Shown here in pieces: positions 20,963 through 55,399 of a stretch of 64,000 nt of DNA; the first letter of the stretch is position 1; every line of letters starts with the position of its first letter. The notes beneath the pieces are model-generated. The model was given only the letters and a program-made list of their open reading frames with translations. It made no database searches and was not told the origin of the DNA. This stretch comes from Setoptus koraiensis. Lineage: Eukaryota; Animalia; Arthropoda. Position numbers and translations under genes: made by a program. The stretch lies in contig CM106586.1 of the NCBI GenBank assembly GCA_048013815.1, positions 18,848,001 through 18,912,000 of the forward strand. The letters are read 5' to 3'.

Positions 20963-21094
20963 CATACGGTCGATATACGGTCGATATACGGTCAGTATAC
21001 GGTCAGTATACGGTCAGTCTACGGCCAGCGTATGGTCAGTGTATGGTCAGTCAATGGTCAGTATACGGCCAGTGTATGGTCAGTGTACGGTCAG
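20963..21094. repeat. Degenerate minisatellite ~12 x 11 bp (GTATACGGTCA-like)
   Basis: Direct inspection. Confidence 0.9.
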
Positions 21095-21945
21095 TGCAGC
21101 TCGCCGGGCAGCTAGCAGCAGCCAATTTGCATACTGCTGCCGGTGGCTCGCCGTGGCGCGCTTGTTGCCGGCCGGGCGCGCTTGATTGGCGAGCGGCGAG
21201 CGGCGACCGCAGCCGACGGCGACCGTTAGCCGTGGCTGGCGGCTCTCCGCCGAAACCGGCCGGCCGCTCGGTCTGGCCAAACATTGTTTGCGGCGGCGGC
21301 GGCGGCCGGCGTTAATGGCTCGCAGGCGCTCATTGGGCCGATTATTGAAATTATCATTATGTTATCGCCGCTATCATTTAAATAATAATATTATTAGCAT
21401 AAACGCAACGATGACTTCATTAGAATCCATTAGCCAGCGCAAGCCGCAACTAGTTTGTTGCTGCCACTTGCGGCTTGCTTATTGGCGCTGGCCGCTCGCC
21501 TCTCGCTATTCGTTGCTCGCCGCTCGCCGCTCGCCTCTCGTTATTCGATGGTCGCCGCTCGCTGGTCGCCGCTCGCTGGTCGCTATTCGCTGGTCGCGAA
21601 TAGCGAATTTGTGAATTGCGAGCTGCGAACTGCGAATTGTGTGCCCATTTAAATATCGCAGCCGCTCGACGGACACACAATTTATAGGCAGTTAATTAAA
21701 GGCAAACGGCCAAACGGTTATCGGCACACACACACACATGAATATATGCATATTGATAGGCGACTTGTATGTGCGGCCGGCGCAAGCTCGCAAGGCCAAC
21801 AACCGGATAAGACAACAAGTGGTTGCAACGTATGCAACATTGTACATGGGCAGCCGTGTTAAAAAAGTTTGTTTTCTCTCAAACAACAAAGTCGTGCATC
21901 ATTTAAATCATGCAAATCAGCTTGTTTGTATGCTCGCTGCCACAG

Positions 21946-21976
<31 letters not shown>

Positions 21977-22574
21977 AAACTTTGTGTGTTCGTGTCTCTC
22001 GTCGATCATTAATTATCTTTTGGGGCATCTTTCGGTCGGCCCGATCTCCGTCTCGTCGTCGCTGTTACTCGCCAGCATTGGGCTGCTACTCGTAGCCGCC
22101 AGAGAGCCAGATAACAACAGCTGATTGGTGCTGCTGTTGTTGTTGTTGTTGTCGATTGTTGGCGCTGTGTGTTGATTGTGTATTTGAATATTCGGTGATG
22201 ATGCTGCAGCAAACATGCTAATGATGCAACTCGCTATGACTCAATTAATACAACACGATGATTGTATGCAAACACACACACACACATGCAAACTGTTGCA
22301 TGTTGGCGCCCTCTGCGCCGGCAGCCGGCAGTTTGTGTACCAACATTAACATACATTGCAACACAATCTGCCATGATACATAAGCCGATATTACGCGCCA
22401 CTGCTACGTATTATCAACCGTGTACTAGTAGTATGAGTATTATCAGGTATGCGCTTTATGAGCCGGCGTATCAAATCCGCGACAGCAACAATATTACATC
22501 AGTCAATAAATAATAATAATGTCTTGACGAGCGCCAACTAAATCAGGTTTACAAGTCGGGCGCAAGTTAGTTAG

Positions 22575-22577
<3 letters not shown>

Positions 22578-22636
<59 letters not shown>
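22578..22636. repeat. (GT)~29 microsatellite
   Basis: Direct inspection. Confidence 0.95.
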
Positions 22637-22638
<2 letters not shown>

Positions 22639-23382
22639 AGGGTGCGATTTGCATCCTGCTATTGCGTAATCCTTCCAACTCTGCGGTCAGGCTGCTCGCT
22701 TGGTCCACTGGCAACACCGCAAATCTCGCATCTCAGGCCATTATCGCCCTTCTCTCACCATCATCAATTCATAACACACACACACACACACATAATGCAT
22801 AATACACATAATACATTATGTAATGTTGTATTATGTGAGTGTGTGTGTGTGTGTGTTTGCTATTAATTGCCTGCAACAGTGCAACTGGGCAGGTGAATTC
22901 ACAGGCACCTGTAACGACACTCAAGGTGACCAGTGAATTTATCCGATCATGCTCATCATGATTTCACTGTATTGCGCAAGCCGGCTAATCATCGTCAGAT
23001 GGCACGCGCGTTACACTAGTTACTACCCTACTTAATTACTGGTCACAAAGCTCGCATTACTATTACGCAATATGCCAGCGATCTTTCGTTTTATTTTTAG
23101 CACAATTCATACCTCTGATATTGTGAGCAGTCAGAACAAACATCGATGCAAAGACAAACCTGTTAAATTTACATCACGCCAAAAAGGTAAATCAACTTTC
23201 TTTGCAAGCTCAACCACTGCCAATAACAATATAGCTGCACCTGTAAGGTGCTCCAAATTTCTTCATTATTCTCCTCGTGTCCATTCACTTCGACACCGAA
23301 TCAACTCTCATATTGCTCAAATCAAATAATGATGTGTGCCTTGCTTGTCTAATGGTCCACCATTCTAATCTTGTCGCTATTC

Positions 23383-23388
23383 TTTATT
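23383..23388 (-). terminator. Candidate polyadenylation signal AATAAA, copy A
   Basis: Plus-strand tttatt ~90 bp inside the duplication boundary; conserved at 49612-49617. Other candidates lie near 23847/50081. Confidence 0.3.
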
Positions 23389-23909
23389 CTTCTTTTCTGT
23401 CTAACACTTACTCACTCGTCAGAGACACTAAATGTAGATGCAGCAGCAGCTTTACATTTTCGTTTTATGTCTAACTACTTGTGGCCATTGTCATTTTTGT
23501 TATAGGTGGCCATGATTTCGTTAACAAACAAATAATCTTGTGTCGGAAAACTTTTCTGCATCAAAATCATCATGCTTGAATAAGTTGCTTCTATATACAG
23601 TTAGTGACCATGCAATGTTGCCTAGGATGAAAAATGTCTTCAGCTCGATTGTGGCTAGTCGTGAAATAAGACGAAACTTCAAAGTCATAAACGCATTACT
23701 ATATAGTTGTGTCTGAATATCCGATAGACTTATAGATCGATCGCAAGAAATTGGTGCATGCCGAGACATACAAGATTAGTCTCGAGATTCGACACTCGAA
23801 ACGGCGGAATTAGGGATTTGTTCTCTTGTGAATGCTAAATTCACTATTTATTTTTATGGTATTGCAACTCGAAATACTTTTCAAATACTCTTCTATCATT
23901 GATAATCAA

Positions 23910-23921
23910 TTAAATAAATAA
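23910..23921 (-). promoter_or_regulatory. AU-rich element (UUAUUUAUU nonamer) in putative 3' UTR of copy A
   Basis: Plus-strand taaataaataag; also present in copy B near 50145-50155. Confidence 0.3.
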
Positions 23922-24086
23922 GTAAGACCTACATCTTTTCATTTAGATTGGAATCCATTATATCTAATCAATCAATTCTGATTTTGTCATACAATTGTTG
24001 AGATGCTGAGAGGCTGTTTGTCTCATGGCAGCTAGCGTCATGCATAAGATACGATTCATTTTAGTCAACAGTTTTTTGCTATCTTC

Positions 24087-25756
24087 CTAAGATGAAGTAA
24101 TCTCGTGTTTTAGTTTTAGCGATTCTTTGCTCAATTCTCTGGGCGACTTGTGATAGTCAGTGGCTTCTGTATCGTTCTCTTCAGTGTCTGTATAGTCAGT
24201 GTGTTCATCCGGATCAGCGGTCATTCGAGAGGAATTGGTATTGTTGCAAAAAGCACTAGTCCTGTCGGTGTGATTATCAGTTTCACTGTTGATGAGATCA
24301 TTAGGCTCAAGCTTAGACTTTTTTCTATGTTGATCATCAGAATGTCCGTAATCAGGGCTATGCTCTATTGTTTTAGAAGATTTTGATAACTGCTCATCAG
24401 TATAGTCTTCGTCGTCATCGCTAACGGTGCGCTCCGGATATTGACGTTTTCTTGATGATCTATTGTTTTTACTTTGGGATGTCTTTGCAACCAGAGAGTC
24501 ATCATCAGTATCATCAATTAGTGGAAACATTTGACTAGTAGTAACCTCTGTCGTCCTTCGCTGGACAAGATTTTTGGCATAAATAAAGTCATCCTCGACA
24601 CGATCAGTCACCTCCTTGCTTCTGAGATCGTCGGCAATATCGATGTGTCCCTCTTCTGACACACTCGGAGACTTGTTGAGATTATCGCGCGATAAATTGT
24701 AAGAATTATTTAACTCTTTTTCGTTATTGCTTGGTGACTTTCTGCAATAGCTATCATCCCTATTGTTTTGTCTTCTGGCATATTTTGCAAGTTGCCGTTT
24801 TTGCGAATCGTTATCGGTCTCTAACCTGTTTAACTCTTCTTCTTGATCATCATCGCTCATCAGTTGGTCTCTGGAACCCGTAAATGATTGAGAATTTTTA
24901 TCGCCATCGGACAATTGCAATTGATGACGGCGTCGATCGTGGTTATCTTTCTGCAATGCACCACACTGATTAGATTGGTAAGAGGCGAACATCGAATTAG
25001 AATGCAGGTCGTGGTGTTGGTTGTGTTGCTGTTGATGTTGATGATGTTGTAGATGAAACGAATTTTGATGATGCACAGAATTGTTAATCAGTTGATTGAC
25101 TGTCATTTCATTAGTGAGGTGATGCTGGTTCATAATGGATGCTTTAGTTGGTATAGGTATGTCTAGATCTAGATTATCATCGTAGTTTGAGTCGTTTATA
25201 GACGACATTGGGGAACCGGGCTCGCTGCTACCCAGAGGTGGGTTGATGCGTTTCTCTTTTTGACGCCTGTTGCAAAACCATACTCTCACTACTTCTTTTT
25301 CCATACACAAATTATCCGCTAACATGGTGATATCTTCGCTAGTGGGTTTTGGGTTGGCGATGAAGGCCTTTTCAAGGGCTACTCTAACAGTTGTCTCAAT
25401 AGAGGTTCGTTTCTTTCGCCTTCTGCCAGCTATGGCTTCAGGTGTATGGTGGTGCAAATGATTTGGATGTAATGGATGATGGGGATGTGATATCATAGAT
25501 GATGATGCCGATGATGGCATTAATGTTGATTGGCTGTTAGTTGTCGGGTGTTGCACAATATTAGATACTGCCATAGCACTGTTCGTTGGCACGATAGAAT
25601 TGTCGGCATCTTGAAGCCAACGCTGGAGCAGAGGCTTCAATTTGCACATATTCTTGAAGCTGAGATTGAGTGCCTCAAATCTCGAGATCGTAGTCTGACT
25701 GAAATCGTTTCCATATAGTTTGCCCATCGCTAGTCCGACATCGCCCTGAGTAAAAC
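24087..25756 (-). CDS. nub: Copy A last exon (POU-specific 3' half, linker, homeodomain, acidic tail)
   Basis: Acceptor aataccag| at 25757; TAG at 24089-24087; 13 aa differences from copy B. Confidence 0.95.
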
Positions 25757-27531
25757 CTGGTATTGTTTTCAAGACAAATATTAATGACATGTGCTCAGCT
25801 GGATGTATCTAAAAAGAGATTTTTCACTTTTGTCTTGTTCACTTACCTAATTTGATGCGGCGTTGCTTGAATGTTTTAGCAAACTGCTCCAACTCTTCTA
25901 AATCTGTTGAGTCATCAAGATTGACGCTACTCTGTAGATTGACATTGGCGTGATTCGTTGTAGGGGTGCTAGAGACACGCTCTGAATGTTGTTGGTTGAT
26001 ATCACATAAATTGTCAACATCCAAAACACTGGATCGATTGAGATCAGGTGAATCATTATGATGGTATTCATCGTTGTTTGAATCCCTCAATGACAAATTA
26101 GATAAGGAGGAACTAGAACGTTGTTCTTTTTGTTGCCTTCCGAAAGTATCATTATCTAAATTGTTTTGATTTAAGCGATTATTGTTGCGATCATTATTCG
26201 ATTCAGAGTTCTGACGTTGCTTTTCATCATCATCTAACCTGGTGTTAACATAATCGTTGTATCTAGACTTAGTGTAGCGCTTCAATGTGGCCTTAGTTTT
26301 CTTTTTAGTTTCATTATTAGATGTCTCATTGTCGCTCAAATCACTATCTTTGTCAGATACGCTACTATGTTGATCACTGTGGTAATCATAAGTGCTATCA
26401 TGATTCTTATTATTCGAATACCTATCGACTGTTGTTCGAGACGTGTTTCGATTCACCATAGAAAGGTCTTTGCTTGTCTGGTGATGACGCAATTCGGTGT
26501 TTGTCTGATTGTTATTTCGTTGGTTCATTTGTTTCTGTTGTTGTAGTTGCATTGATCTCAATTGGCTAACCGTCGGCGACCCACTCTGAATTCCAATAAT
26601 TTGTCTAGAGCCCTGCGATATCTTTGCCGACGACTGACGTTGGCTGGATTGTTGATTGCCGTGGTGACTCGGTTGAACTTGGTTATGTTGGTGCTGCTGC
26701 TGGTGATGGCTATGATCGTGATTGTGTTGTTGTTGTTGCTGTTGTTGGATTTGATGATCCGAAATAGAGTTGATATTGTATGCACCTGATTGAGAGAGAC
26801 CAAGACTAGCTAATAGGGCAGGATTACTGAGTAATTGTTGTGCTACTTGAGGGGTGGGTATCGATTGTGCATTATTCTGGGGCGACATAAGCATCAGATT
26901 AGTTGGTGTTTGTGAGCCTAAGGCAGCCTGTTGAAGTTGCTGCTGGAAGGCGGCTTGCAATTGATTGTTCAACTGATCGAGATTGTGCTGTTGCAAAGAA
27001 GATAACAATAAATTTTGCATGTTATGTTGCTGGTTGGGGTCCATCGATGGTAGCTGTTGCTGATGATTTGGTTGCTGTTGTTGAAGCTGACTTAATATGT
27101 GAGCCTGGGGTCCGGTGGTGGCCGCTGCTGCTGCAGCAGCAGCAGCGGCTGCCACCACAAGAGGATTCTGTTGTTGTTGTTGTTGTTGAGAATTTGAATG
27201 TTTTTGTTGGGCAAAGCTCTGTAGGCTCTGTTGAATCAAATTTTGCTGTCGGAAATTGCGGATAGGAGATGAGAGAAAGGAAAACGTTAACGGTTGTAAA
27301 ATTTTGGTTATGTGTTGCATGAAGGGTCGCATCAAGCTACATAAATGTGCTGTGTCTTACCTGATTTTGCATCAGAAACTGAGCCTGAAGAGCTCCCGGT
27401 CGCATGAACATAAGAGGATTGAATGGTGTTTGCTGACCCCTATGTTGTTGCTGTTGTTGTTGTTGCTGCTGCTGTTGTTGCTGTTGCTGGAAGAACTGCT
27501 GCAGGGCGCCAACATTTGGACCCATGGCCAT
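24087..27531 (-). CDS. nub: Class II POU-domain transcription factor (nubbin/pdm-like), copy A, 5'-truncated duplicate; 3 coding exons, 1079 aa from MAMGP
   Basis: Exons 27361-27531, 25847-27245, 24087-25756 sum to 3240 nt. GT-AG introns at 27246-27360 (phase 0) and 25757-25846 (phase 1). POU-specific domain and homeodomain are identical in protein to copy B. Frame stays open upstream to 27789 without ATG. Confidence 0.88.
25847..27245 (-). CDS. nub: Copy A middle exon
   Basis: Acceptor ttccgacag|CAA AAT at 27246; donor TTA G|gtaagt at 25846. Confidence 0.92.
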
Positions 27532-27786
27532 CGCCGATGAGTTGTCTGCAATGGGCTTGTTATTGGGACCGGTGGTGGATAGGCCGATATTGGCGTTGAT
27601 TGTGGTGCGGTGAATGGGAGGATTGTGTGGAATTTTTAAGGTTTGTGTCGAATTTGAGAATTGTGTCGAATTGGAGGCTGTCGGTGACGATAATTGATTG
27701 TCGTTGTCTTGGCGATGATGCTGATTGTTCGATGACTCGGCCTGTTGTTTTACTAATTTTTGCAGGTTGGCGCCGCTTGTGTCGCA
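27361..27786 (-). CDS. nub: Copy A exon homologous to copy B exon 3 (coding certain only from ATG 27531)
   Basis: Donor AAT CAG|gtaag at 27360. Open frame from 27789. Possible phase-0 acceptor aataacag|TGC at 27787, but no upstream exon was found. Confidence 0.6.
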
Positions 27787-27978
27787 CTGTTATTATATTA
27801 TATATATTATATTATTATTACTATTATTGTCGAATTGTTGCTGGCTACGAGTTGCGAATTGGCTCGTTGTCGGAGTTGGTCACTCGGCTCAAATGAGTGG
27901 TTTGTCGTGCAATGTTGAGTGTGGTTAATTAATAATGTGTGTTAATTGGCTTGTTGAGTCATGATTGTGATGACGATG

Positions 27979-27986
27979 ATGCAAAT
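27979..27986 (+). promoter_or_regulatory. Octamer ATGCAAAT (POU class II binding site), conserved in both paralogues
   Basis: gatgatGCAAATTA context retained at 54308-54315 in otherwise diverged non-coding DNA. Confidence 0.5.
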
Positions 27987-28560
27987 TATTGTCGTTGGCG
28001 ATTTGATGTCTGATTTGAATTGCGTGCAACAACAATGATAATAATTGAATAATCACATTTGAGATAATGGCTGCTCACATTGGATCACATTGTATTGAGG
28101 CAATTGCTGTGTTGATAATTGGTTCGCTGGGACGCGCACAGTCTGCACTGCACTGCACAAACACGGCACAACGGCAGAACAAAACAACAAAACAACAAAA
28201 AATTCTATATGTTCTATCAAAAAGTTCTATACGGTGTTTGTACGGCACTCGTTGTCGAACATTGACACAATAGCAACGCGCACACTAATCGAATGGCATG
28301 TTATTCGATCGTGTGTCGTCAAGCGTCGTCGAACTATACGAGCCCAAACTCCTCCCCCTTTTAACAGGCTCACAAATGCGAGCACAACCAACAACTAATA
28401 ACACCAACAACTAACAACTAACGCGCACACTGTGCCACTCTTGTGAATCATTCACAGTGCAAGCATGTTTGCATGTGTGCAGACGCGCGCACAAAGCTAG
28501 CTACTAACTGAAGCCAGCCAGACACTTTTGCATGGCCCATCAGAGCAGAGACTCATCTGC

Positions 28561-28570
28561 GCGCATGCGC
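28561..28570. promoter_or_regulatory. GCGCATGCGC palindrome (NRF1/Erect-wing-type motif)
   Basis: Conserved at 54837-54846 while the sequence immediately to its left has diverged. Confidence 0.4.
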
Positions 28571-28630
28571 ACTCGCCATGCTCCACAGTGAGATGCGCAA
28601 TTGGGCAAATTCACAGTTGCCAATTGTATA

Positions 28631-29168
28631 ACACAATGGATCATCAACAAATCGTCAGTATAGTCTGAATAGTACTCAGTGAGTAGTCACCGTTACAGAC
28701 CAAGACTGCACTGATCAAAACTGAGTTATCAAAAGTTATCAAAATCCTCTAAAACAATAGAGCGCAGCCCTCATTACAAACACTCTGATGATCGACATGG
28801 AAAAAAATCCAATCTAATGATCTCATCAACAGTGAAACTGATGATCACACCGACGGGGCTACTGCTTTTTGAGAACTTTTTTTTTTGAGAACAGAAGCCA
28901 CTGACTATCACAAGTCGCCCAGAGAATTGAGCAGAGAATCGCTAAAACTAAAACACGAGATTGCTTCATCTCAAGGAAATAGCAGAAATGAATCATATCT
29001 TATATCATATCGCTTGACGCTAGCTGCCACGAGACGAACAGCCTGTGTGCATCTCGACTTGTGACATGTATGACAAAATTGATCACAATTGATTGATTAG
29101 ATAGAATGGATTGCAATCTAAATGAAAAGATGTAGGTCTCACTTATTTATCTAATTGATTATCAATGA
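28631..29168 (+). pseudogene. Inverted, decayed fragment of the POU gene 3' end (C-terminal coding region plus proximal 3' UTR)
   Basis: Aligns to the reverse complement of ~23896-24465. Encodes KSSKTIERSPHYKHSDD and [27 protein letters not shown], followed by UTR match atctaaatgaaaagatgtaggtctcacttattt. Has a frameshift near 28810, TGA at 28870-28872 and a large internal deletion. Confidence 0.9.
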
Positions 29169-30850
29169 TTCAATGAATTGAATGATCTGAATCTCTCGCT
29201 TCCATTTATTTTTGGTTCTTGCTCGACATTTTTTTTCTTCACTTCTCGTCACTCACACCCTCTCCCGCGACCCGTGCCCCTTTTCTGCCACATCTCCCCA
29301 TGAAGGCCATCACTGCCTAGAAATTCACTTCCGTATCGAGACGAGAATTCTTTTTCTACAAGCTCAAAACTGTATTGGATTTTCGAAGGGGGTCGCGTGT
29401 GCTTTTGCACTCCATCTACGCACACACTCACACCAGCACGCATATGAATTGTGCGCTCGCGCATCGACAAACCGAGGGGGAAACCGAATGGAATTTCAAC
29501 ACACAGAAGGGGGTCACGTGTTTTTCTTGTCTCACTTAGGGCCCCTAAGGTAGGCGAGTGCCGTTCCAAAAATAAACGCTCAATTCAACGAGAGAATTTT
29601 TAATTTTTCGTGCTTCATTTGGCTGTTGCGATAGTCGGATATTTGGGCAAGTTATCGCGATCAATCTGGCAGCTTGCAATATCAGAATATTCAATATAGT
29701 GACGCGTTTATGATTGTTGAAGTTTGTTTGTGGCCACTTGTTACTAACTAGTCGCTCATGACAGACTCGTGCTGGTTGTTTTGTTGTTTTGTGTGTACAA
29801 GCCACGACAAGTGTTGTTTGTCAGTGTGTGTGTGTGTTTATTTGTGCCACAAATACAAATTATCTCTCATGTGTGTGCCTGCTGAATCTTAATTACTGCA
29901 TCACATTGATTGTGACTCGCAATTTGCGCCGGAGACTCATCAATGTTTTTGGTTGTTGCTGTTGTTGTTGCTGTTGTTGTTGCTGCTGTTGTTGCTGTCG
30001 TTGTTGGCATTGTTCGCGGCCCATTAAGAGCAACGCGGCGGCTGTCACGCCGGCGCTGACCACTATCAGTAGTGGCCATTCAACAGTGACTGGTGCGGTC
30101 GACAGTGCGCCGCAACCACTGCCCAGCAAGCTAGTGCAACAATTATACAATTACACAGCAACAAGTTGCCTATATATATATATACATGTAATGTCGACTT
30201 GCACAACAGTGGGCCATTAATTAATGTCATTGTGCACTCGACCATTATGCAACTCATGGCGCGGCTCCGATTGCTGACTGGCGGCTGCTCGTCGGACGCT
30301 GCTCCGCTGTTTCGCGCTGCTTCGCACTGCCTCGCTCTCGCACTGCCTCGGTCTCGCACTGGCTCGGTCTGGCCCGACGAGTCAGCGATGCCGCAATGGT
30401 GCCAGTTTGCTCATTTAGTCGCACTCTAACGACGCCACCAGCACTAATTAGTGATAGTCACAATTAGTGACGCTCACAAAGCGCCCAAAACAGCACGCAA
30501 TCACGTTCCTGCCTTTCCCTTGGCGCTGCATGGCCGCCGATGTTGTGCGGTTATGTCACTGCGCCACACACTTGCTGCCACTTTGCCACAGTCACTTGGA
30601 GTAACACTAAACACACTGTAAACACGGCCACAAACAAATGATGCCAACAACCACTTGTTGCCGGCCCTCATTTGTTGCCGGCCGTCATTTGCGGGCCGGC
30701 AAGTTGGCGAGTTTGCGAGCTGGCGAGTTTGCCAATGGCGAGCGCCGGCAAGTGCCAAATGATGACTGACATCGCCGGTCATGACAGACAAGCTCGTGTT
30801 TGTTTGTGCGCGTTCACTTTCAAATTTGTTTGTTCGCGCACACAAACCGT

Positions 30851-30930
30851 TGGAAACCATTAGAAGCCATTAGAAATTATTGGAAATCGCTGGAAATCGC
30901 TGGAAATCGCTGGAAATCGCTGGAAATTGT
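30851..30930. repeat. Minisatellite ~8 x 10 bp (TGGAAATCGC-like)
   Basis: Direct inspection. Confidence 0.85.
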
Positions 30931-32247
30931 CTCTAATTGTTGACGTCCAACGGTCGGCCCCAACTGGTGCTCATGTTTTCGTTGCGCCATCTCTCAGTGG
31001 TGGCGACCTCGTTCGCTCGGGCCGTCAGTGGCCCAAGACGAAAATGACCATCATCGATTATCGCTGAACCGGCCGCGCGCCGACCAAACAACCAATGTAA
31101 TGGCCATTGTTGTTGTTGTTGGCACAAACTCGCTACTCGAGCCACTCTCCACTCGAATGGCTCATAATACATTTATAATAACCGTTATTGTGCCGGCAAC
31201 GTCGAGTGTCGGACATTGACGAGGACAAGTGGACTGGCTCGTTTGTTTGTTGTCACTGCGTCTACCGGCCGCGTCTGTCGGTCGCGTCCATCGGCCGCCT
31301 CTATTGGCTCCGTCGACCACCTAGTGGCCGCTGGTCCATTCATGGCGGCCGACTGGTGTTTCGCATCAAGCTGTTTGGTGCACGCACCGGCGACGTGTCG
31401 GCCTGAGGCCGGCGAGCAAGCGCGGCGTTGGCCAGGTTATTGGCCTAGCTGGCAACTGGCACAAATCAAATGGGCTCATCGGCGCACCGTCGAACAGTCG
31501 ACAAACAATTACCTGCTTGCACGGCGCGAATCGACAAATGACTTGTCGTGTTTGGAGTGCGCATCGCCGGTTCGTGCAGCGCGCCTTCTCCAACCGGCAA
31601 CTCTCACTGTGAGCCTCAGAGAAGCCGAACAGAGAGAACAGCTCGGCCGATTGACGGCCACCGTTGCCCGAACAAGTATGGAAGAATTGTCGAACAAGTA
31701 TCGAAGAAGCGCTTCGAGCGCGAATTATCGCGCGCTGCACAATCCACGACACAGTGTGCAACTGCAGCACAACAATCACAGAGCAACAAATAGCAACAAT
31801 AACGATAACAACGACATGATCGAAATGGGAAACGCGCCGATTGATCGGGGCGAGCGTCGTCATGAGATCGATGAAACGTGCAACCGAATCCGTCCGACAG
31901 GCACAAAATTGAGCATCCAATTTAGCCGCGCGCACTGTATCCAGCGCTTACCTGTATGGGCTCAGGTAAGCGCACAGGTAAGCGCACAGGTAAGCGCACA
32001 GGTGAGCGAGCACGCGGCCAAGGCGAGCGGCTCCCATGCTACAGGCAGGCGGACAATTGGTAATTATGGTGATGGGATTCTGCGAGCCACTAGGTGAAGT
32101 AGCCAGGTGATGTGGGCTGGCGATTCGCCTCGGAGCGCTGACTGTTTGTGAGTGCGCTGGCTTGTGATGGCCGTGGCCACTGCCGGCAGCAACAGCGCCG
32201 CCAGTGGCCACGGACAGCAACTGCCGGGAAGCTCGTGCAACCTATAA

Positions 32248-47389: not shown

Positions 47390-48511
47390 ATGTTTGCCGC
47401 AGCTAGCGAGTATATGTTATTAAGTTTAAATTTCTTTGAGATCATCATAAACCTGCTATATCTGGCCTTGTATTTTGCCAATATGAGTTTCGGTGTGGTA
47501 TTAAACTCCTCCAACTCCAATTCAAATTCAAAATACAGCAATCAGAATTCCAACAACCACAATAGTGAGGCTCAAGCACTAGACCAACACGACCACAACG
47601 ATGACGACTATCTCAAATACCACAATAGGAGCTCTGCTTGGCTCACCATTATTGACGACAAACCCGAACCCAATCCGACGCACACCTTGGGTCATCCCGG
47701 CAAAAACGGCAAAAAAATGACCACATTTGCCAATGACCTAGTTGACCACAGCACAACTCTAGCCGTCAGAGGCAAGCCAACAAACAACAGCGCTGAGACA
47801 TCTGTCAAGAAATCTTTTTACAAAACACTACCCAAGGCTTTTGGCAAACGACACGGAGAGGACAGAGTGAAACACAGTAATATTGTCTATGGAGGTTCTC
47901 TTGGCGGTAGTCAAGAATCGCTCAAGTCCGGACAAACAACTTCTTCCTCGTCATCGACATCGTCGTTGCACAACATAGCACCTAATAGACCACCTCCGCC
48001 ACCACCAATAAATAGAAGAAGCAGCGGCGTGAGTACATTCAATGGTATACCACCGCCAACTACAATTACAAGCCACCTAGCAGCAACAAGTGGAGGAGCA
48101 CCCAGCCGAGAGCAGATGTTTATATCGTTGCTGACTTCTATGTTTGGATTCTTCTCAGCCAAGTTTCATCTCACCTGGCTTCTGCTATTCTATTCAATCT
48201 ACATAATGACCGGACTTGTTCTGTGGCTCTACAATCATGCCTTCTTCTATCGACGTGTGAGACATTTAAATTATCCAGAACAAGCGGATTACAATCGGCG
48301 CTCATCAGCTGCCCCCAAGGCGGTTGGTTTAGTTGTTTCGGCACCCAGCCAATCGCTAGGACTTTCATCGGCTTTAGACCTAACTAGAGTGTGCGACAAT
48401 ATGTACGATGAGGTCCATTTGCAAATGTTAGCTTCGAGACGCGATGTGGTCGACATTGGTCTGAAACTAGTACTGATCATGAGTGCCTACGATCTTTCTA
48501 ACAGTCTATAA
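47390..48511 (+). CDS. Unknown multi-pass membrane protein, 373 aa, apparently single coding exon; start uncertain (Met1 or Met9)
   Basis: Long non-repetitive ORF. Hydrophobic segments LLSLNFFEIIINLLYLALYFANMSFGVV, MFISLLTSMFGFFSA, LTWLLLFYSIYIMTGLVLWLY and IGLKLVLIMSAY. Possible upstream intron from donor ttttag|gtaag at 47081 to acceptor tttgccgcag| at 47402. AATAAA at 48986. Confidence 0.75.
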   Translation: MFAAASEYMLLSLNFFEIIINLLYLALYFANMSFGVVLNSSNSNSNSKYSNQNSNNHNSEAQALDQHDHNDDDYLKYHNRSSAWLTIIDDKPEPNPTHTLGHPGKNGKKMTTFANDLVDHSTTLAVRGKPTNNSAETSVKKSFYKTLPKAFGKRHGEDRVKHSNIVYGGSLGGSQESLKSGQTTSSSSSTSSLHNIAPNRPPPPPPINRRSSGVSTFNGIPPPTTITSHLAATSGGAPSREQMFISLLTSMFGFFSAKFHLTWLLLFYSIYIMTGLVLWLYNHAFFYRRVRHLNYPEQADYNRRSSAAPKAVGLVVSAPSQSLGLSSALDLTRVCDNMYDEVHLQMLASRRDVVDIGLKLVLIMSAYDLSNSL

Positions 48512-50320
48512 TTGTTATGTGATTAGTTCGATTGCTATCAATTTAGTGGTGATTCCATGAAAGCCAACTCCGCAACAATAATAACCATTCTATCAATGCA
48601 ACAACCAAACAAGCAATCGCAATTACATGCACAACTAACTTCATGACACACATTTGCACACACAATAAGTGGTCTATTCATATTTCAAGCGCTGTTCCTA
48701 ATACTATATAGTGCCCTTTGCTGAGTAGATTGCTCTGATGATCTCTAGTTTTTTTTTGAATCTTATAATATTGAATAGAATCAAAAGCGAAAACGGACAC
48801 AAAGCAAACCATGATTGTGAGCTAGTGAGAAAGACTCATCTCAAAACGACGCTAAACAGAAATGACACACCACTTAAAGAAAATTGTAGACGCCAAATAA
48901 CAAGTGCGAGTATAGACAAGTTTGAATTAGTTCAAACTAACCATTCGTGCACATTCTGACACACAGCGTCTTCTTCACTTCTTCGAATAAAAGAACTAAC
49001 TAGAGCTATTGTTCGTATCCAACCAAAGAGCAGTTGTTGTTTGTAGCTAAATCGTGAATGATGATTCCATTCAGCAAAACATCAAGAGGTTACATGTTTC
49101 AACTTATCACTGAGTGTATGTGTTTTGTCGTTTTTATCACCGTTTTTGTTGTGTCGGTGTGTCATGATTATTATTATTTTCATGGAATATGGATTGATTG
49201 AATAATAAGCTGATCACCTCTAAGCTTCGCCGTGGCTTGTTAGAGATGCCGAGAGGCAATCCGACGGGCAAAAATTTGCCCAGGTAATAGGCAAATAATA
49301 GATTTAGCATGTGTCAGTTGTTGACGCTCGACTCATGTCGGTAACATGAATAACAAAAATTATGATGCCAAACTTCTATTGCCAACTGCTGCACATAGAA
49401 TTGATTCTTTCTATATTCCATTTATTTTTACCTTGCTCACTTGTTGTTCATATTCCAATCGAATGACAACGACAGTCGCATACTTTGCACTACAAACAAT
49501 AAACTTCTATTGGGCATTGAATCGCCGAATCAACTCTCATATTGCTCAAATCAAATAATGATGTGTGCCTTGCTTGTCAAATGGTCCACCATTCTAATCT
49601 TGTCGCTATTCTTTATTCTTCTTTTCTGTCTAACACTTACTCACTCGTCAGAGACACTAAATGTAGATGCAGCAGCAGCTTTACATTTTCGTTTTATGTC
49701 TAACTACTTGTGGCCATTGTCATTTTTGTTATAGGTGGCCATGATTCTGTTAACAAACAAATAATCTTGTGTCGGAAAACTTTTCTGCATCAAAATCATG
49801 CTTGAATAAGTTGCTTCTATATACAGTTAGTGATCATGCAATGTTGCATAGGATGAAAAATGTCTTCATCTCGATTGTGGCTAGTCGTGAACTAAGACAA
49901 AACTTCAAAGTCATAAACGCATTACTATATAGTTGTGTCTGAATATCCGATAAGCTTATAGATCGATCGCGAGAACTTCGTGTATGCATAGGCATACTAG
50001 ATTAGTCTTGAGATACGATACTCTCGGAACAACGAAATTAAGGATTTATTCTCTTGTACTTGTGATTGTTAAATTCACCGTTTATTTTTGTGGTATTGCA
50101 ACTTGATATACTTTTTAAATACTCTTCTATCATTGATAATCAATTAAATAAATAAGTAAGACCTACATCTTTTCATTTAGATTGGAATCCATTCTATCTA
50201 ATCAATCAATTCTGATTTTGTCATACAATTGTTGAGATGCTGAGAGGCTGTTTGTCTCATGGCAGCTAGCGTCAAGCTTAAGATACAATTTATTTTAGCC
50301 AATAGCTTTCTGGTATTTTC

Positions 50321-51990
50321 CTAAGATGAAGTAATCTCGTGTTTTAGTTTTAGCGATTCCTTGCTCAATTCTCTGGGCGACTTGTGATAGTCAGTGGCTT
50401 CTGTATCATTCTCTTCAGTGTCTGTATAGTCAGTGTGTTCATCCGGATCAGCGATCATTCGAGAGGAATTGGTATTGTTGCAAAAAGCACTAGTCCTGTC
50501 GGTGTGATTATCAGTTTCACTGTTGATGAGATCATTAGGCTCAAGCTTGGACTTTTTTCTATGTTGATCATCAGAATGTCCGTAATCAGGGCTATGCTCT
50601 ATTGTTTTAGAAGATTTTGATAACTGCTCATCAGTATAGTCTTCGTCGTCATCGCTAACGGTGCGCTCCGGATATTGACGTTTTCTTGATGATCTATTGT
50701 TTTTACTTTGGGATGTCTTTGCAACCAGAGAGTCATCATCAGTATCATCAATTAGTGGAAACATTTGACTAGTAGTAACCTCTGTCGTCCTTCGCTGGAC
50801 AAGATTTTTGGCATAAATAAAGTCATCCTCGACACGATCAGTCACCTCCTTGCTTCTGAGATCGTCGGCAATATCGATGTGTCCCTCTTCTGACACACTC
50901 GGAGACTTGTTGAGATTATCGCGCGATAAATTGTAAGAATTATTTAACTCTTTTTCGTTATTGCTTGGTGACTTTCTGCAATAGCTATCATCCCTATCGT
51001 TTTGTCTTCTGGCATATTTTGCAAGTTGCCGTTTTTGCGAATCGTTATCGGTCTCTAACCTGTCCAACTCTTCATCTTGATCATCATCACTCATCAGTTG
51101 GTTTCTGGAACCCGAAAATGATTGAGAATTTTTCTCGCCATCGGACAATTGTAACTGATGACGGCGTTGATCATAATTATCTTTCTGCAATGCACCACAC
51201 TGATTAGATTGGTAAGAGGCGAACATCGAATTAGAATGCAGGTCGTGGTGTTGGTTGTGTTGCTGTTGATGTTGATGATGTTGTAAATGAAACGAATTTT
51301 GATGATGCACAGAATTGTTAATCAGTTGATTGACTGTCATGCCATTAGTGTGGTGATGCTGGTTCATAATGGATGCTTTAGTTGGTATAGGTATGTCTAG
51401 ATCTAAATTATCATCGTAGTTTGAGTCGTTTATAGACGACATTGGGGAACCGGGTTCGCTGCTACCCAGAGGCGGGTTGATGCGTTTCTCTTTTTGACGC
51501 CTGTTGCAAAACCATACTCTCACTACTTCTTTTTCCATACACAAATTATCCGCTAACATGGTGATATCTTCGCTAGTGGGTTTTGGGTTGGCGATGAAGG
51601 CCTTTTCAAGGGCTACTCTAACAGTTGTCTCAATAGAGGTTCGTTTCTTTCGCCTTCTACCAGCTATGGCTTCAGGTGTATGGTGGTGCAAATGATTTGG
51701 ATGTAATGGATGATGGGGATGTGATATCATAGATGATGATGCCGATGACGACATTAATGTTGATTGGCTGTTAGTTGTCGGGTGTTGCACAATATTAGAT
51801 ACCGCCATAGCACTGTTCGTTGACACGATAGAATTGTCGGCATCTTGAAGCCAACGCTGGAGCAGAGGCTTCAATTTGCACATATTCTTGAAGCTGAGAT
51901 TGAGTGCCTCAAATCTCGAGATCGTAGTCTGACTGAAATCGTTTCCATATAGTTTGCCCATCGCTAGTCCGACATCGCCCTGAGTAAAAC
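50321..51990 (-). CDS. nub: Copy B last exon: 3' half of POU-specific domain, linker, homeodomain, acidic C-terminal tail
   Basis: Acceptor aataccag|GT TTT ACT CAG with AG at 51992-51991; TAG at 50323-50321. Confidence 0.95.
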
Positions 51991-54900
51991 CTGGTATTGT
52001 TTTCAAGACAAATATTAATGACATGTGCTCAGCTGGATGTATCTAAAAAGAGATTTTTCACTTTTGTCTTGTTCACTTACCTAATTTGATGCGGCGTTGC
52101 TTGAATGTTTTAGCAAACTGCTCCAACTCTTCTAAATCTGTTGAGTCATCAAGATTGACGCTACTCTGTAGATTGACATTGGCGTGATTCGTTGTAGGGG
52201 TGCTAGAGACACGCTCTGAATGTTGTTGGTTGATATCACATAAATTGTCAACATCCAAAACACTGGATCGATTGAGATCAGGTGAATCATTATGATGGTA
52301 TTCATCGTTGTTTGAATCCCTCAATGACAAATTAGATAAGGAGGAACTAGAACGTTGTTCTTTTTGTTGCCTTCCGAAAGTATCATTATCTAAATTGTTT
52401 TGATTTAAGCGATTATTGTTGCGATCATTATTCAATTCAGAGTTCTGACGTTGTTTTTCATCATCATCTAACCTGGTGTTAACATAATCGTTGTATCTAG
52501 ACTTAGTGTAGCGCTTCAATGTGGCCTTAGTTTTCTTTTTGGTTTCATTATTAGATGTCTCATTGTCGCTCAAATCACTATCTTTGTCAGATACGCTACT
52601 ATGTTGATCACTGTGGTAATCATAAGTGCTATCATGATTCTTATTATTAGAGTACCTGTCGACTGTTGTTCGAGACGTGTTTCGATTCACCTTAGAAAGG
52701 TCTTTGCTTGTCTGGTGATGACGCAATTCGGTGTTTGTCTGATTGTTATTTCGTTGGTTCATTTGTTTCTGTTGTTGTAGTTGCATTGATCTCAACTGGC
52801 TAACCGTCGGCGACCCACTCTGAATTCCGGTACTTTGTCTAGATCCTTGCGATATCTTTGCCGACGACTGACGTTGGTTGGATTGTTGATTGCCGTGGTG
52901 ACTCGGTTGAACTTGGTTATGTTGGTGCTGCTGCTGGTGATGGCTGTGATTGTTATTGTGTTGTTGTTGTTGCTGTTGTTGGATTTGTTGATCCGAAATA
53001 GAGTTGAACAAGTTATGTTGGGGTAGACCCAAGGCACTGATTGGGTTAAGTTGAGGCAGTTGCTGTTTATTATTGTATCCACCTGATTGAGAGAGACCAA
53101 GACTAGCTAATAGGGCAGGATTACTGAGTAATTGTTGTGCTACTTGAGGGGTAGGTACCGGTTGTGCATTATTCTGGGGCGACATAAGCAGTAGATTAGT
53201 TGGTGCCTGTGAGCCCAATGCAGCCTGCTGAAGCTGTTGTTGGAACGCGGCTTGGAATTGATTGTTCAACTGATCGAGATTGTGCTGTTGCAAAGAAGAT
53301 AACAATAAATTTTGCATGTTATGTTGCTGGTTGGGGTCCATCGATGGTAGCTGTTGCTGATGATTTGGTTGCTGTTGTTGAAGCTGACTTAATATGTGAG
53401 CCTGGGGTCCGGTGGTGGCCGCTGCTGCCGCAGCAGCAGCAGCGGCTGCCACCACGAGAGGATTCTGTGGTTGTTGAGAATTTGAATGTTTTTGTTGGGC
53501 AAAGCTCTGTAGGCTTTGTTGAATCAAATTTTGCTGCAGAAAATTCTAGATAGGAGAGAAAGAAATTAACGTTAACGCTGTAAGCACCGAACATATTTTG
53601 AAAGAAGAATTAAAGTAGCTGCATTTGTTTTGTAGCTTACCTGATTTTGCATCAAAAATTGAGCTTGAAGAGCTCCCGGTCGCATGAACATAAGAGGATT
53701 GAATGGTGTTTGCTGACCCCTATGTTGTTGCTGTTGTTGCTGCTGCTGCTGCTGTTGTTGTTGTTGCTGTTGCTGGAAGAACTGCTGCAAGGCACCAACA
53801 TTCGGACCCATGGCCATCACCGATGAGTTGTCTGCAATGGGGTTGTTATTGAGACCAGTAGTGGAGAGGCCAATATTTGGTGTTGATTGGGGTCCTGAAT
53901 TGGAGGATTGTGTCGAATTAGAGGTTGTCGGTGCGGATACGGTTGCCGGCGACGAAGGGCTAGTGGCAATAGATAATTGATTGTTGTTGTCCTCGCGATG
54001 ATGTTGATTGTTTGATGACTTAGTGTGTTGATTTACTAAGTTGCTGGTTGTGGCTGCCGCTGACGATAATGCGCTGCAATTATTATTATTATTGTTGTTG
54101 GCTACAAGTTGCGAAACGGCTAGACTGTTGTTGGCTTGTTGTCGAAGTTGGTCACTCAGCTAAATTGTTGTTTGTGATTAGAGTGTCAAGTGTGATTAAG
54201 GGGGGTCGATGGTATTAGAGGCGATGAGAGTTAAATGTTAATTAATAATTGTGTTAATTGATGTGCATGTGCGTTAACTCATGACGACGGCCATTATGAT
54301 GATGATGATGCAAATTACTATCATTAGCGATCAATTGCAATGTGTAATTGCATGCAACAACACTAATAATAATTGAATAATCATAGTAGCGATAATAGCT
54401 CCTCATCACATTGTATTGAGAGAACGCTGTTATTATTGATATTAATTGAGTCGCTTTTCACCGCCGGGAGTCATGTTTCTCGGCTGTACAGTCTGCAAAC
54501 AAAACGGCAGAACAAAACAACAAAAAATTCTATATGTTCTATACGTTTGTACGCCATTCGTTGTCGAACATTGACACAATAGCGACACACACACACACAC
54601 ACACACTCGACTAATGGAATGGCATGTTATTCGATCATTTCGTCAACCGTCGTCGAACTATACGAGCCCAGACTCCTCCCCCTCGGGCTCACAATTGCGA
54701 GCACAACAACTAACGTGCACACTGTGCCCCTCTTGTGTGTGCGTATGTATTGCGAGACGCGCACACAAAGCTAGCTAGTAACCGAAGCCAGCCAGACACT
54801 TTTGCATGCCACCAACTTGGTTATCTGTATAACTGGGCGCATGCGCACTCGCCTCGTTCCACAGTGAGGGTCGCAGGGGGGGGGGAGTCGCATTAGTCAG

Positions 54901-55399
54901 AGTCACACATACAAAAAAACTATTGGCCCGTTCAAACTTGCCGCCAAACACCAGACCACAATCAATTCCACTTACCTGTTGGTGCTCCTGGCGCTGCTGT
55001 GGGTTTTGTTGTTGCGCCACGGCGAAATTGCTCTGCAACATTTGCATTTGTTGCTGGCTAGAAGCGACCCACTGCCGTTCGTTGGTTCGGTTCAATATTC
55101 CAATGTCCACCCATTCAATTAGTATTTAATTAGCAAGCAAATTATCGGGCAAGAGTATGAGAAAAGAGAAGCGGACAATTAATGAGCTGTGGATCGATTG
55201 GTGCAATAGCAGGCCAAAATGAAACCAAACGGAAGTGATGCCAATAGTGATGAATTGTTACGACACTCACATGAGCCAGTTGATTCAGGCTGAGACCATT
55301 TGCTGCCGCCGTCGACAACATTTGTGCCGTGGCTGCCGCCGCCTCCTGATCCGTGTTCGGGCCCGCTTGATCCATTTTAGATGATAAACGATGCTGCAT
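50321..55399 (-). CDS. nub: Class II POU-domain transcription factor (nubbin/pdm-like), copy B, probable full-length parent; 5 predicted coding exons, ~1280 aa
   Basis: POU-specific domain [20 protein letters not shown]|[43 protein letters not shown] and homeodomain [21 protein letters not shown]...[16 protein letters not shown] are class II (Oct-1/Nub) type. [13 protein letters not shown] resembles the Nub/Pdm linker end. Exons 55271-55399, 54976-55053, 53641-54159, 52081-53533, 50321-51990 join through GT-AG introns in phases 0,0,0,1 and sum to 3849 nt (divisible by 3). Family call is strong; the 5' exons are less certain. Confidence 0.88.
52081..53533 (-). CDS. nub: Copy B exon 4: Gln/Ala/Asn-rich region and first half of POU-specific domain
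   Basis: Acceptor ttttctgcag|CAA AAT at 53534; donor AAA TTA G|gtaagt at 52080 (phase 1); open throughout. Confidence 0.93.
53641..54159 (-). CDS. nub: Copy B exon 3: [11 protein letters not shown]...SVMAMGP...Q17...MQNQ
   Basis: Donor AAT CAG|gtaag at 53640. Frame is open from 54159, preceded by aatttag (phase-0 acceptor). Peptide partly conserved in copy A. Confidence 0.8.
54308..54315 (+). promoter_or_regulatory. Octamer ATGCAAAT in predicted intron 2 of copy B
   Basis: Homologous to 27979-27986. Confidence 0.5.
54837..54846. promoter_or_regulatory. GCGCATGCGC palindrome (NRF1/Erect-wing-type motif)
   Basis: Homologous to 28561-28570. Confidence 0.4.
54976..55053 (-). CDS. nub: Copy B predicted exon 2: [26 protein letters not shown]
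   Basis: Perfect donor CAA CAG|gtaagt at 54975 (phase 0). Acceptor cttctagccag| at 55054; an alternative phase-0 AG would start the exon at 55071. Gln-rich like the rest of the protein. Confidence 0.6.
55271..55399 (-). CDS. nub: Copy B predicted first coding exon: [43 protein letters not shown]
   Basis: Donor GCT CAT|gtgagt at 55270 (phase 0). In-frame TGA 9 nt upstream of ATG 55399. The second ATG (55375) has a strong TCTAAAATGG context and may be the real start. Confidence 0.6.

Follow-up and report, generated by a model that had tools for sequence, protein, structure and literature searches.

Pseudogenes are a source of antisense RNAs and endo-siRNAs in mouse oocytes. In other organisms, both hpRNA-derived and pseudogene-derived siRNAs are likewise established (PMC10292708, PMC3616710, PMC2708354). 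The hpRNAs of Drosophila have highly complementary arms, carried on one demonstrated primary transcript, and give rise to 21-22-nt siRNAs that depend on Dcr-2 and AGO2 (PMC10292708). Two of the loci concerned, Nmy and Tmy, consist of gene-derived inverted sequence able to pair with the transcript of the gene, and arose together with a young gene duplication (PMC10292708, PMC10317233). For human psiPPM1K (PMC3616710) and for pseudogenes of rice (PMC2708354) the source is a dead partial gene copy with an antisense strand complementary to the parent mRNA, and in these cases transcription and small RNAs have been measured. Among eriophyoids, the only RNAi inventory that we found is that of Aculops lycopersici, whose siRNA pathway has been called absent or non-canonical (PMC7738191).

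At the level of DNA, chains and cycles of templated insertions, together with linked inverted duplications lying beside tandem duplications, form a documented class of rearrangement (PMC7025897). Duplications formed by template switching (FoSTeS/MMBIR) can have a short inverted copy of nearby sequence at the junction, joined by a very short linker, and chains of templated insertions can carry fragments of distant loci (PMC7025897).

Here we describe a locus of the mite Setoptus koraiensis that invites comparison with all of these systems. The window, which is the whole 64,000-nt stretch of DNA that was analysed (positions 18,848,001 to 18,912,000 of contig CM106586.1, assembly GCA_048013815.1; positions given below are those of the window unless a genomic location is named), contains two paralogous POU2 genes, A and B, and an inverted third copy of their 3' end, C. 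Like Nmy and Tmy, C is gene-derived inverted sequence that could pair with the transcript of the gene, and it would have arisen together with a gene duplication. Unlike them, it has arms that are 85% alike, differ by nine indels and lie 4.2 kb apart, and one of these arms is the apparently functional 3' end of a gene under selection. Like psiPPM1K and the rice pseudogenes, it is a dead partial copy complementary, on its antisense strand, to the parent mRNA.

The likeness to the rearrangement class is of another kind. C is a short inverted copy from nearby, placed at a duplication junction with a very short linker, and at the other junction of copy A lies a fragment of a distant locus, eyes-absent (eya), from another chromosome. 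The locus differs from that class in being, as we read it, an old germline event in a mite, of which just the decayed product is left and in which any microhomology at the joints is no longer readable; its fillers, moreover, differ in apparent age and may not date from a single event. We argue below that the inverted copy is probably non-coding, decaying filler of the rearrangement that made the truncated POU2 copy A.

The POU2 paralogues

The genome comprises 48.7 Mb in two contigs. Both POU2 genes lie on the minus strand of the window. Copy B is the full-length parent, and its block homologous to A, defined by comparison of the two, spans 49525..54880. Copy A (23296..28605, from homology to B and from Pfam) is a 5'-truncated class-2 POU paralogue of the nubbin/Oct-1 type, from which the first two coding exons of B (about 54960-55399) are absent. 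It keeps exon X, at about 27790-27359, which ends ...LMQNQ and is followed by gtaag, and two large exons at about 27246-25839 and 25790-24087. Pfam domains of the host gene are Pou (E 4e-25) and Homeodomain (E 5e-18). In protein searches the exons were queried singly. A word search with the 567-aa last-exon ORF returned POU-domain relatives only, the closest being arthropod POU2/nubbin proteins, with no record from the same species, and an exhaustive search among 1.84 billion representatives found no relative of the lineage-specific 378-aa tail, not even the tail itself.

In the last exon the A-versus-B pN/pS is 0.24, and both copies therefore look functional. The identity between them is a patchwork: it is 96-100% in the coding body, where several 150-bp windows reach 100% and synonymous divergence is 4.6%, and outside the coding body it falls to 90-93% for the 3' UTR and to 68-90% for the upstream non-coding DNA (27173-28592). 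The coding bodies of A and B have evidently been homogenised. In the large Q-rich coding exon, copy B carries about 51 extra bases, in frame (26773-26872 in A vs 53020-53169 in B).

Upstream of exon X (27790-27900 in A; about 54080-54200 in B), the frame of B is open through an (AAT)n run and that of A is frameshifted. The translation start of copy A is probably the ATG at 27531 (MAMGPNVG...), our candidate for this role. Just inside the A/B breakpoint (28419-28600; 54711-54868) there are three well-kept blocks, which include GCGCATGCGC and a near-octamer, TTTTGCAT, and are surrounded by poorly conserved intron-derived DNA. They may constitute a candidate internal promoter or enhancer, which would explain how a truncated copy can work. 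The 21-kb spacer between the paralogues has one sizeable ORF, at 47390-48511 (+), which is initiated by an ATG and encodes 373 residues, rich in Ser, Asn and Pro and hydrophobic towards the C terminus.

An inverted copy of the POU2 3' end

Copy C lies upstream of copy A and is divergent from it, its sense-like strand being the + strand of the window. The main part of C, delimited by BLAST and alignment, occupies 28630..29169 (+) and matches the 3' end of both paralogues at 85% identity (E 1e-85). It corresponds to the last 127 codons, in the last exon, and the first 192 nt of the 3' UTR, and its equivalent in copy A is 23895-24469. When 28400-29400 was compared with the window by BLAST, three collinear inverted pieces were found in both copy A (24469-23895) and copy B (50703-50129). 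The piece at 28891-29169 matches copy B at 50404-50129 (84.6%, E 1e-86) and copy A at 24170-23895 (84.3%, E 5e-85); that at 28734-28871 matches 50625-50481 and 24391-24247, each at about 84-85% (E 1e-41 to 1e-42); and that at 28630-28661 matches 24469-24438 in copy A and 50703-50672 in copy B. In a three-way alignment, the identities over 497 ungapped columns are 98.0% for A and B and 85.1% for C with either of them.

An earlier, sequence-only reading of this DNA had proposed an inverted third copy of the 3' end of the gene, and BLAST and the three-way alignment agree with it on this point. Its estimate of about 540 bp, made up of about 125 codons and the proximal 3' UTR, was close to what we find, and the short words that it singled out as diagnostic behave as it described, GCTTGACGC and TAGATAGAATGG agreeing with copy B and AAATGAATC with copy A. 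A search of the whole 48.7-Mb genome found copies A, B and C only, and C is thus not a dispersed repeat. A default repeat finder did not detect C, which it overlooked because of the indels.

At the left edge, A and B gradually cease to be alike at about 28605-28617, and C starts from 28630. By alignment the joint between them measures about 12-25 bp (28606-28629; 28606..29169 when taken together with the main part of C). The sequence-only reading had set the start of C about 40 bp beyond the breakpoint, which is correct if the breakpoint is placed by BLAST (38 bp, from 28592) but too far if it is placed by alignment. No further inverted homology was found to the left of 28630 (z 1.8), nor with the region upstream of copy B. 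A palindrome at the joint, CAATTGGGCAA...TTGCCAATTG, was considered as a snap-back signature and dropped, since 8% of random windows fold equally well.

At the right edge the extent given earlier holds for the homologous body of C but not for its end, because 29169 is the edge of an insert and inverted homology resumes at 29567. Sensitive local alignment against the continuation of the A/B 3' flank shows that this homology past the insert is collinear with the main part (z 10-16). It comprises two stretches. The first, 29567..29589 (+), is 87% identical over 23 nt to B 50090-50068, is collinear with the parts on either side of it and carries a copied AATAAA at 29571. The second, 29649..29725 (+), is the last detectable part of the inverted copy and corresponds to B 49978-49900 and A 23704-23674, with 74% identity over 80 columns (E 3e-6; z 15.8 vs shuffles). 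The collinearity of these two stretches implies that about 800 bp of source were copied, from B 50703 to 49900, so that 49900-50703 is the equivalent in copy B of the whole inverted copy. No inverted homology was found beyond 29725.

The insert that interrupts the inverted copy is about 400 bp long (29170..29566, from comparison with its genomic paralogues). Its core, about 29216-29555 (about 340 bp), is a three-copy non-coding repeat with 66-82% identity and strongly shared blocks, the paralogues lying at G000:C2:4079322-4079613 (L007:2023-2314) and C2:18778820-18779146 (L008:1320-1647). No terminal inverted repeats, ORF, Rfam match or neighbouring genes were found for this repeat. The lack of terminal inverted repeats and a fold z-score of +0.9 rule it out as a MITE or fold-back element.

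As the 3' end of a last exon followed by 3' UTR with a poly(A) hexamer, C resembles a fragment of a processed pseudogene. It differs from one in having neither an A-tail nor a target-site duplication and in abutting a DNA-level duplicate that retains its introns. An origin as a retrocopy was rejected, there being no A-run after 29169 or after 29725 and no flanking direct repeat of more than 6 nt.

Decay and age of the inverted copy

All three + frames of C contain stops, and the original stop codon has changed from TAG to CAA. There are nine indels of 4-53 bp, comprising deletions of 7, 4, 53 and 14 nt and insertions of 12, 14, 8, 5 and 4 nt, and substitutions are spread over codon positions 1, 2 and 3 in the ratio 20:16:18. 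By these marks C is dead as coding sequence, and it reads as a neutrally decaying pseudo-fragment. The 69 substitutions comprise 41 transitions and 28 transversions, and indels of 1-3 nt are absent; this combination implies evolutionary divergence rather than read error or a chimeric-read artefact.

At the ten sites in the shared region at which A and B differ, C agrees with A five times and with B five times, and never with neither. Given this even split, C behaves as an outgroup that predates the latest homogenisation of A and B, which is what the sequence-only reading had supposed in calling C older than the present homogenised state. C is equidistant from the two paralogues and has one of the two alleles at every one of these sites, and so has not co-evolved with either. 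Eight of the ten differences fall within the 43 nt that immediately follow the stop codon (24041-24083; 50275-50317), which form a local hot spot between paralogues that are otherwise near-identical.

How old, then, is C? Divergence in the unconverted non-coding DNA of A and B equals or exceeds that of C, which therefore does not have to be older than the duplication. Its 85% identity fits the age of the duplication, and the two can stem from the same event.

Decay along C is uneven. Mismatches are over-dispersed (dispersion test, p = 0.00025), and two blocks are well kept in all three copies, one at about 28891-28975, in the last codons, and the other at 29069-29169, in the 3' UTR. Their mismatches number 1/50 and 4/97, compared with about 20% elsewhere in C, a contrast that misalignment around indels may inflate. 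We simulated the extreme situation in which C decays evenly and the A/B lineage alone is constrained, with zero change in some regions; the density of mismatches then varies at most two-fold, and even under this extreme the observed dispersion is nominally significant (P 0.01-0.03). The uneven decay counts against plain neutral filler and calls for gene conversion in patches or for some constraint on C. Of these, patchy conversion between the inverted repeats, which lie 4 kb apart, explains the well-kept blocks most simply, although local constraint may act on them.

A foreign fragment at the other edge of copy A

The opposite, left edge of the copy-A block also carries a piece of another gene's tail. 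This piece, at 23176..23275 (-), is 100 bp long and was copied from the last eyes-absent (EYA) exon on chromosome 1 (G000:C1:1424461-1424568), with its sense on the minus strand. Over about 100 nt it has two mismatches to the source and has lost 8 nt in a single deletion (about 98% identity). The source ORF (L006:1761-2141) matches EYA2 in the PDB (3geb, E 2.5e-24) and TIGR01658 (E 2e-22). Copy A is flanked on both sides by gene-tail fragments, the foreign eya piece at one end and the self-derived inverted C at the other. About 400 bp to the left of the eya fragment, at 22765-22869, there is a 105-bp self-complementary stretch (80% identity) beside GT/CA microsatellites.

A probable origin by rearrangement

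At one junction of copy A, inverted sequence of the same gene, from 4.2 kb away, starts about 12-38 bp past the A/B breakpoint; at the other, the eya piece sits 18-20 bp outside the block. Together with the homology, orientation, extent and decay pattern of C and its uniqueness in the genome, these two bracketing fragments point to the rearrangement that produced the truncated copy A, of which C is in our judgement probably the non-coding, decaying filler. Most probably it has no function of its own. The sequence-only reading had also suggested that C is the footprint of a complex duplication-inversion event, a proposal that the second filler, at the other edge of copy A, strengthens.

We envisage a repair or replication event at the level of DNA in which about 5.3 kb of the parental copy B would have been copied, beginning in intron 2 and running to a point about 0.8 kb beyond the stop codon. 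At the upstream joint the template would have been switched to the opposite strand, and the 3' end of the gene copied backwards over about 800 bp; at the opposite edge of the block, a short stretch of the last eya exon would have come to lie, taken from the other chromosome. A low-copy repeat of 340-400 bp would later have landed inside the inverted piece. The inverted piece would then have gathered substitutions and frame-breaking indels, and the coding bodies of A and B would have been kept alike by gene conversion and purifying selection.

The apparent ages of the parts are a complication for a single event. C is 85% identical to its source, the unconverted non-coding DNA of A and B 68-90% and the eya fragment about 98%, although any dating from these values is blurred by gene conversion and by unequal constraint on the source sequences. 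The difference between the eya fragment and C counts against one event, and the two fillers may be of different date.

Possible antisense or fold-back RNA

Could the inverted copy act through RNA? A minus-strand transcript starting to the right of C would include about 540-800 nt complementary to both POU2 mRNAs at their 3' ends. Pairing, either by fold-back of the copy-A pre-mRNA over about 4.2 kb or in trans, would generate dsRNA leading to endo-siRNAs or editing, and the dosage of the duplicated gene would be damped. The geometry is indeed as the sequence-only reading, from which this proposal comes, had described it. In the predicted duplex the longest perfect runs are 43, 29, 28 and 26 bp, with 126-151 nt in runs of at least 21 nt and 46-51 possible perfect 21-mers, and the computed gain on cofolding is about -400 kcal/mol. 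The genome encodes at least three Dicer-like and at least ten Argonaute/Piwi loci, the precedents in other organisms are firm, and the two well-kept blocks of C have changed less than simple neutral decay predicts.

The state of C, however, argues against such a role. It has diverged by 15%, has nine indels and has tracked neither A nor B, whereas the arms of known hpRNAs are 'highly complementary' (PMC10292708); an identity of 85.1% over the 497 aligned columns, with indels of 4-53 bp, falls short of that description. The inverted copy has, furthermore, since been split by an insertion. An Rfam search within 28600-29800 gave no match at E up to 1, and fold z-scores of -1.2 and -1.4 for the two strands of C indicate no unusual fold. 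The related eriophyoid Aculops lycopersici is reported to be without clear AGO2, R2D2 and RdRP (PMC7738191). In the present genome the RdRP profile PF05183 had no match, though the controls were equally silent.

Transcription presents a further difficulty. The fold-back model implies that the copy-A transcript would have to start to the right of C. If unspliced, a leader that took in C would measure at least 1.67 kb, have 23 or more upstream ATGs and cross an AATAAA at 29210 and an ATTAAA at 29604 (minus strand). No upstream ATG occurs in the 259 nt that precede the candidate ATG at 27531. The A/B-conserved block at 28419-28600, just downstream of C, would be the more natural position for a promoter or enhancer, and if this candidate promoter fired divergently it would read C in sense, not antisense. 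For a coding mRNA, it is unlikely that one primary transcript would contain both arms. RNA of the antisense or fold-back kind is physically possible, with a low prior; the sequence by itself gives little reason to expect antisense transcription of C, and we consider this explanation unlikely.

Other explanations

A second possibility is that the well-kept blocks of C are of use as DNA or as sense RNA. They would then be cis-regulatory DNA upstream of copy A, or would belong to a divergent + strand transcript that carries decoy 3'-UTR motifs and ends at the AATAAA at 29571. Divergent transcription from the region upstream of A would read C in sense, the copied poly(A) hexamer has been retained, and the over-dispersed decay, with so few mismatches in the two blocks, fits a local constraint; the block in the 3' UTR is also the best kept between A and B. 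Gene conversion between the inverted repeats would, however, account for the well-kept patches without any function, and the blocks were chosen post hoc and are of modest significance. Their motif content is AT-rich. No RNA structure is conserved: of the three copies, C alone has a hairpin in the 3'-UTR block, z being about 0 for A and B. The 400-bp insertion now parts the main part of C from its copied poly(A) signal. We regard a sense or DNA element as decidedly unlikely.

A duplication born with its own brake is more doubtful still. Here, a minus-strand transcript entering from the right would read through C, possibly as an alternative long copy-A pre-mRNA, and would pair with the 3' ends of both POU2 mRNAs. 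Small RNAs or editing would trim the dosage of a developmental regulator, and the function would reside in the two well-kept blocks.

Under capture by a transposon, a Helitron/Helentron or Pack-type element would have carried the mosaic of eya, POU2 and inverted POU2 as cargo, and repair or replication would not have produced it. The genome does have Helitron-type Rep genes, and two chromosomes and both orientations are represented among the fragments. But these Rep genes, the only ones of Helitron type, are 18 Mb distant, the whole structure occurs once in the genome, and recurrent element termini are found in neither flank: 22300-23295 and 29170-30400 have no multi-copy matches save microsatellites and the three-copy repeat, which lacks terminal inverted repeats. 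Comparison of 21000-32000 by BLAST with two Helentron-rich stretches and the Rep region gave CAA/CAG low-complexity matches only. We judge such an origin very improbable. An assembly artefact, from a chimeric or fold-back read or a collapsed haplotype, is scarcely credible even though inverted joins beside duplicated genes are a classic site of misassembly, because it would be near-identical to its source, whereas C has the substitutions and indels given above and carries an independent insertion, the sequence is unique, and there are no N runs in the window.

Implications

If C is filler of the rearrangement that made copy A, as we think probable, the locus provides a natural example of a gene duplicate that arose via a multi-template rearrangement, which left inverted and foreign filler at the edges of the duplicate. 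Gene conversion between the POU2 paralogues A and B can also be dated with C as internal outgroup. Were C instead transcribed in antisense, a developmental transcription factor would have gained a new regulator. A duplication with its own brake, if true, would place such regulation in a mite lineage whose siRNA pathway is thought absent or non-canonical, and antisense transcription of C would offer a means of asking whether a long-dsRNA pathway works in gall mites.
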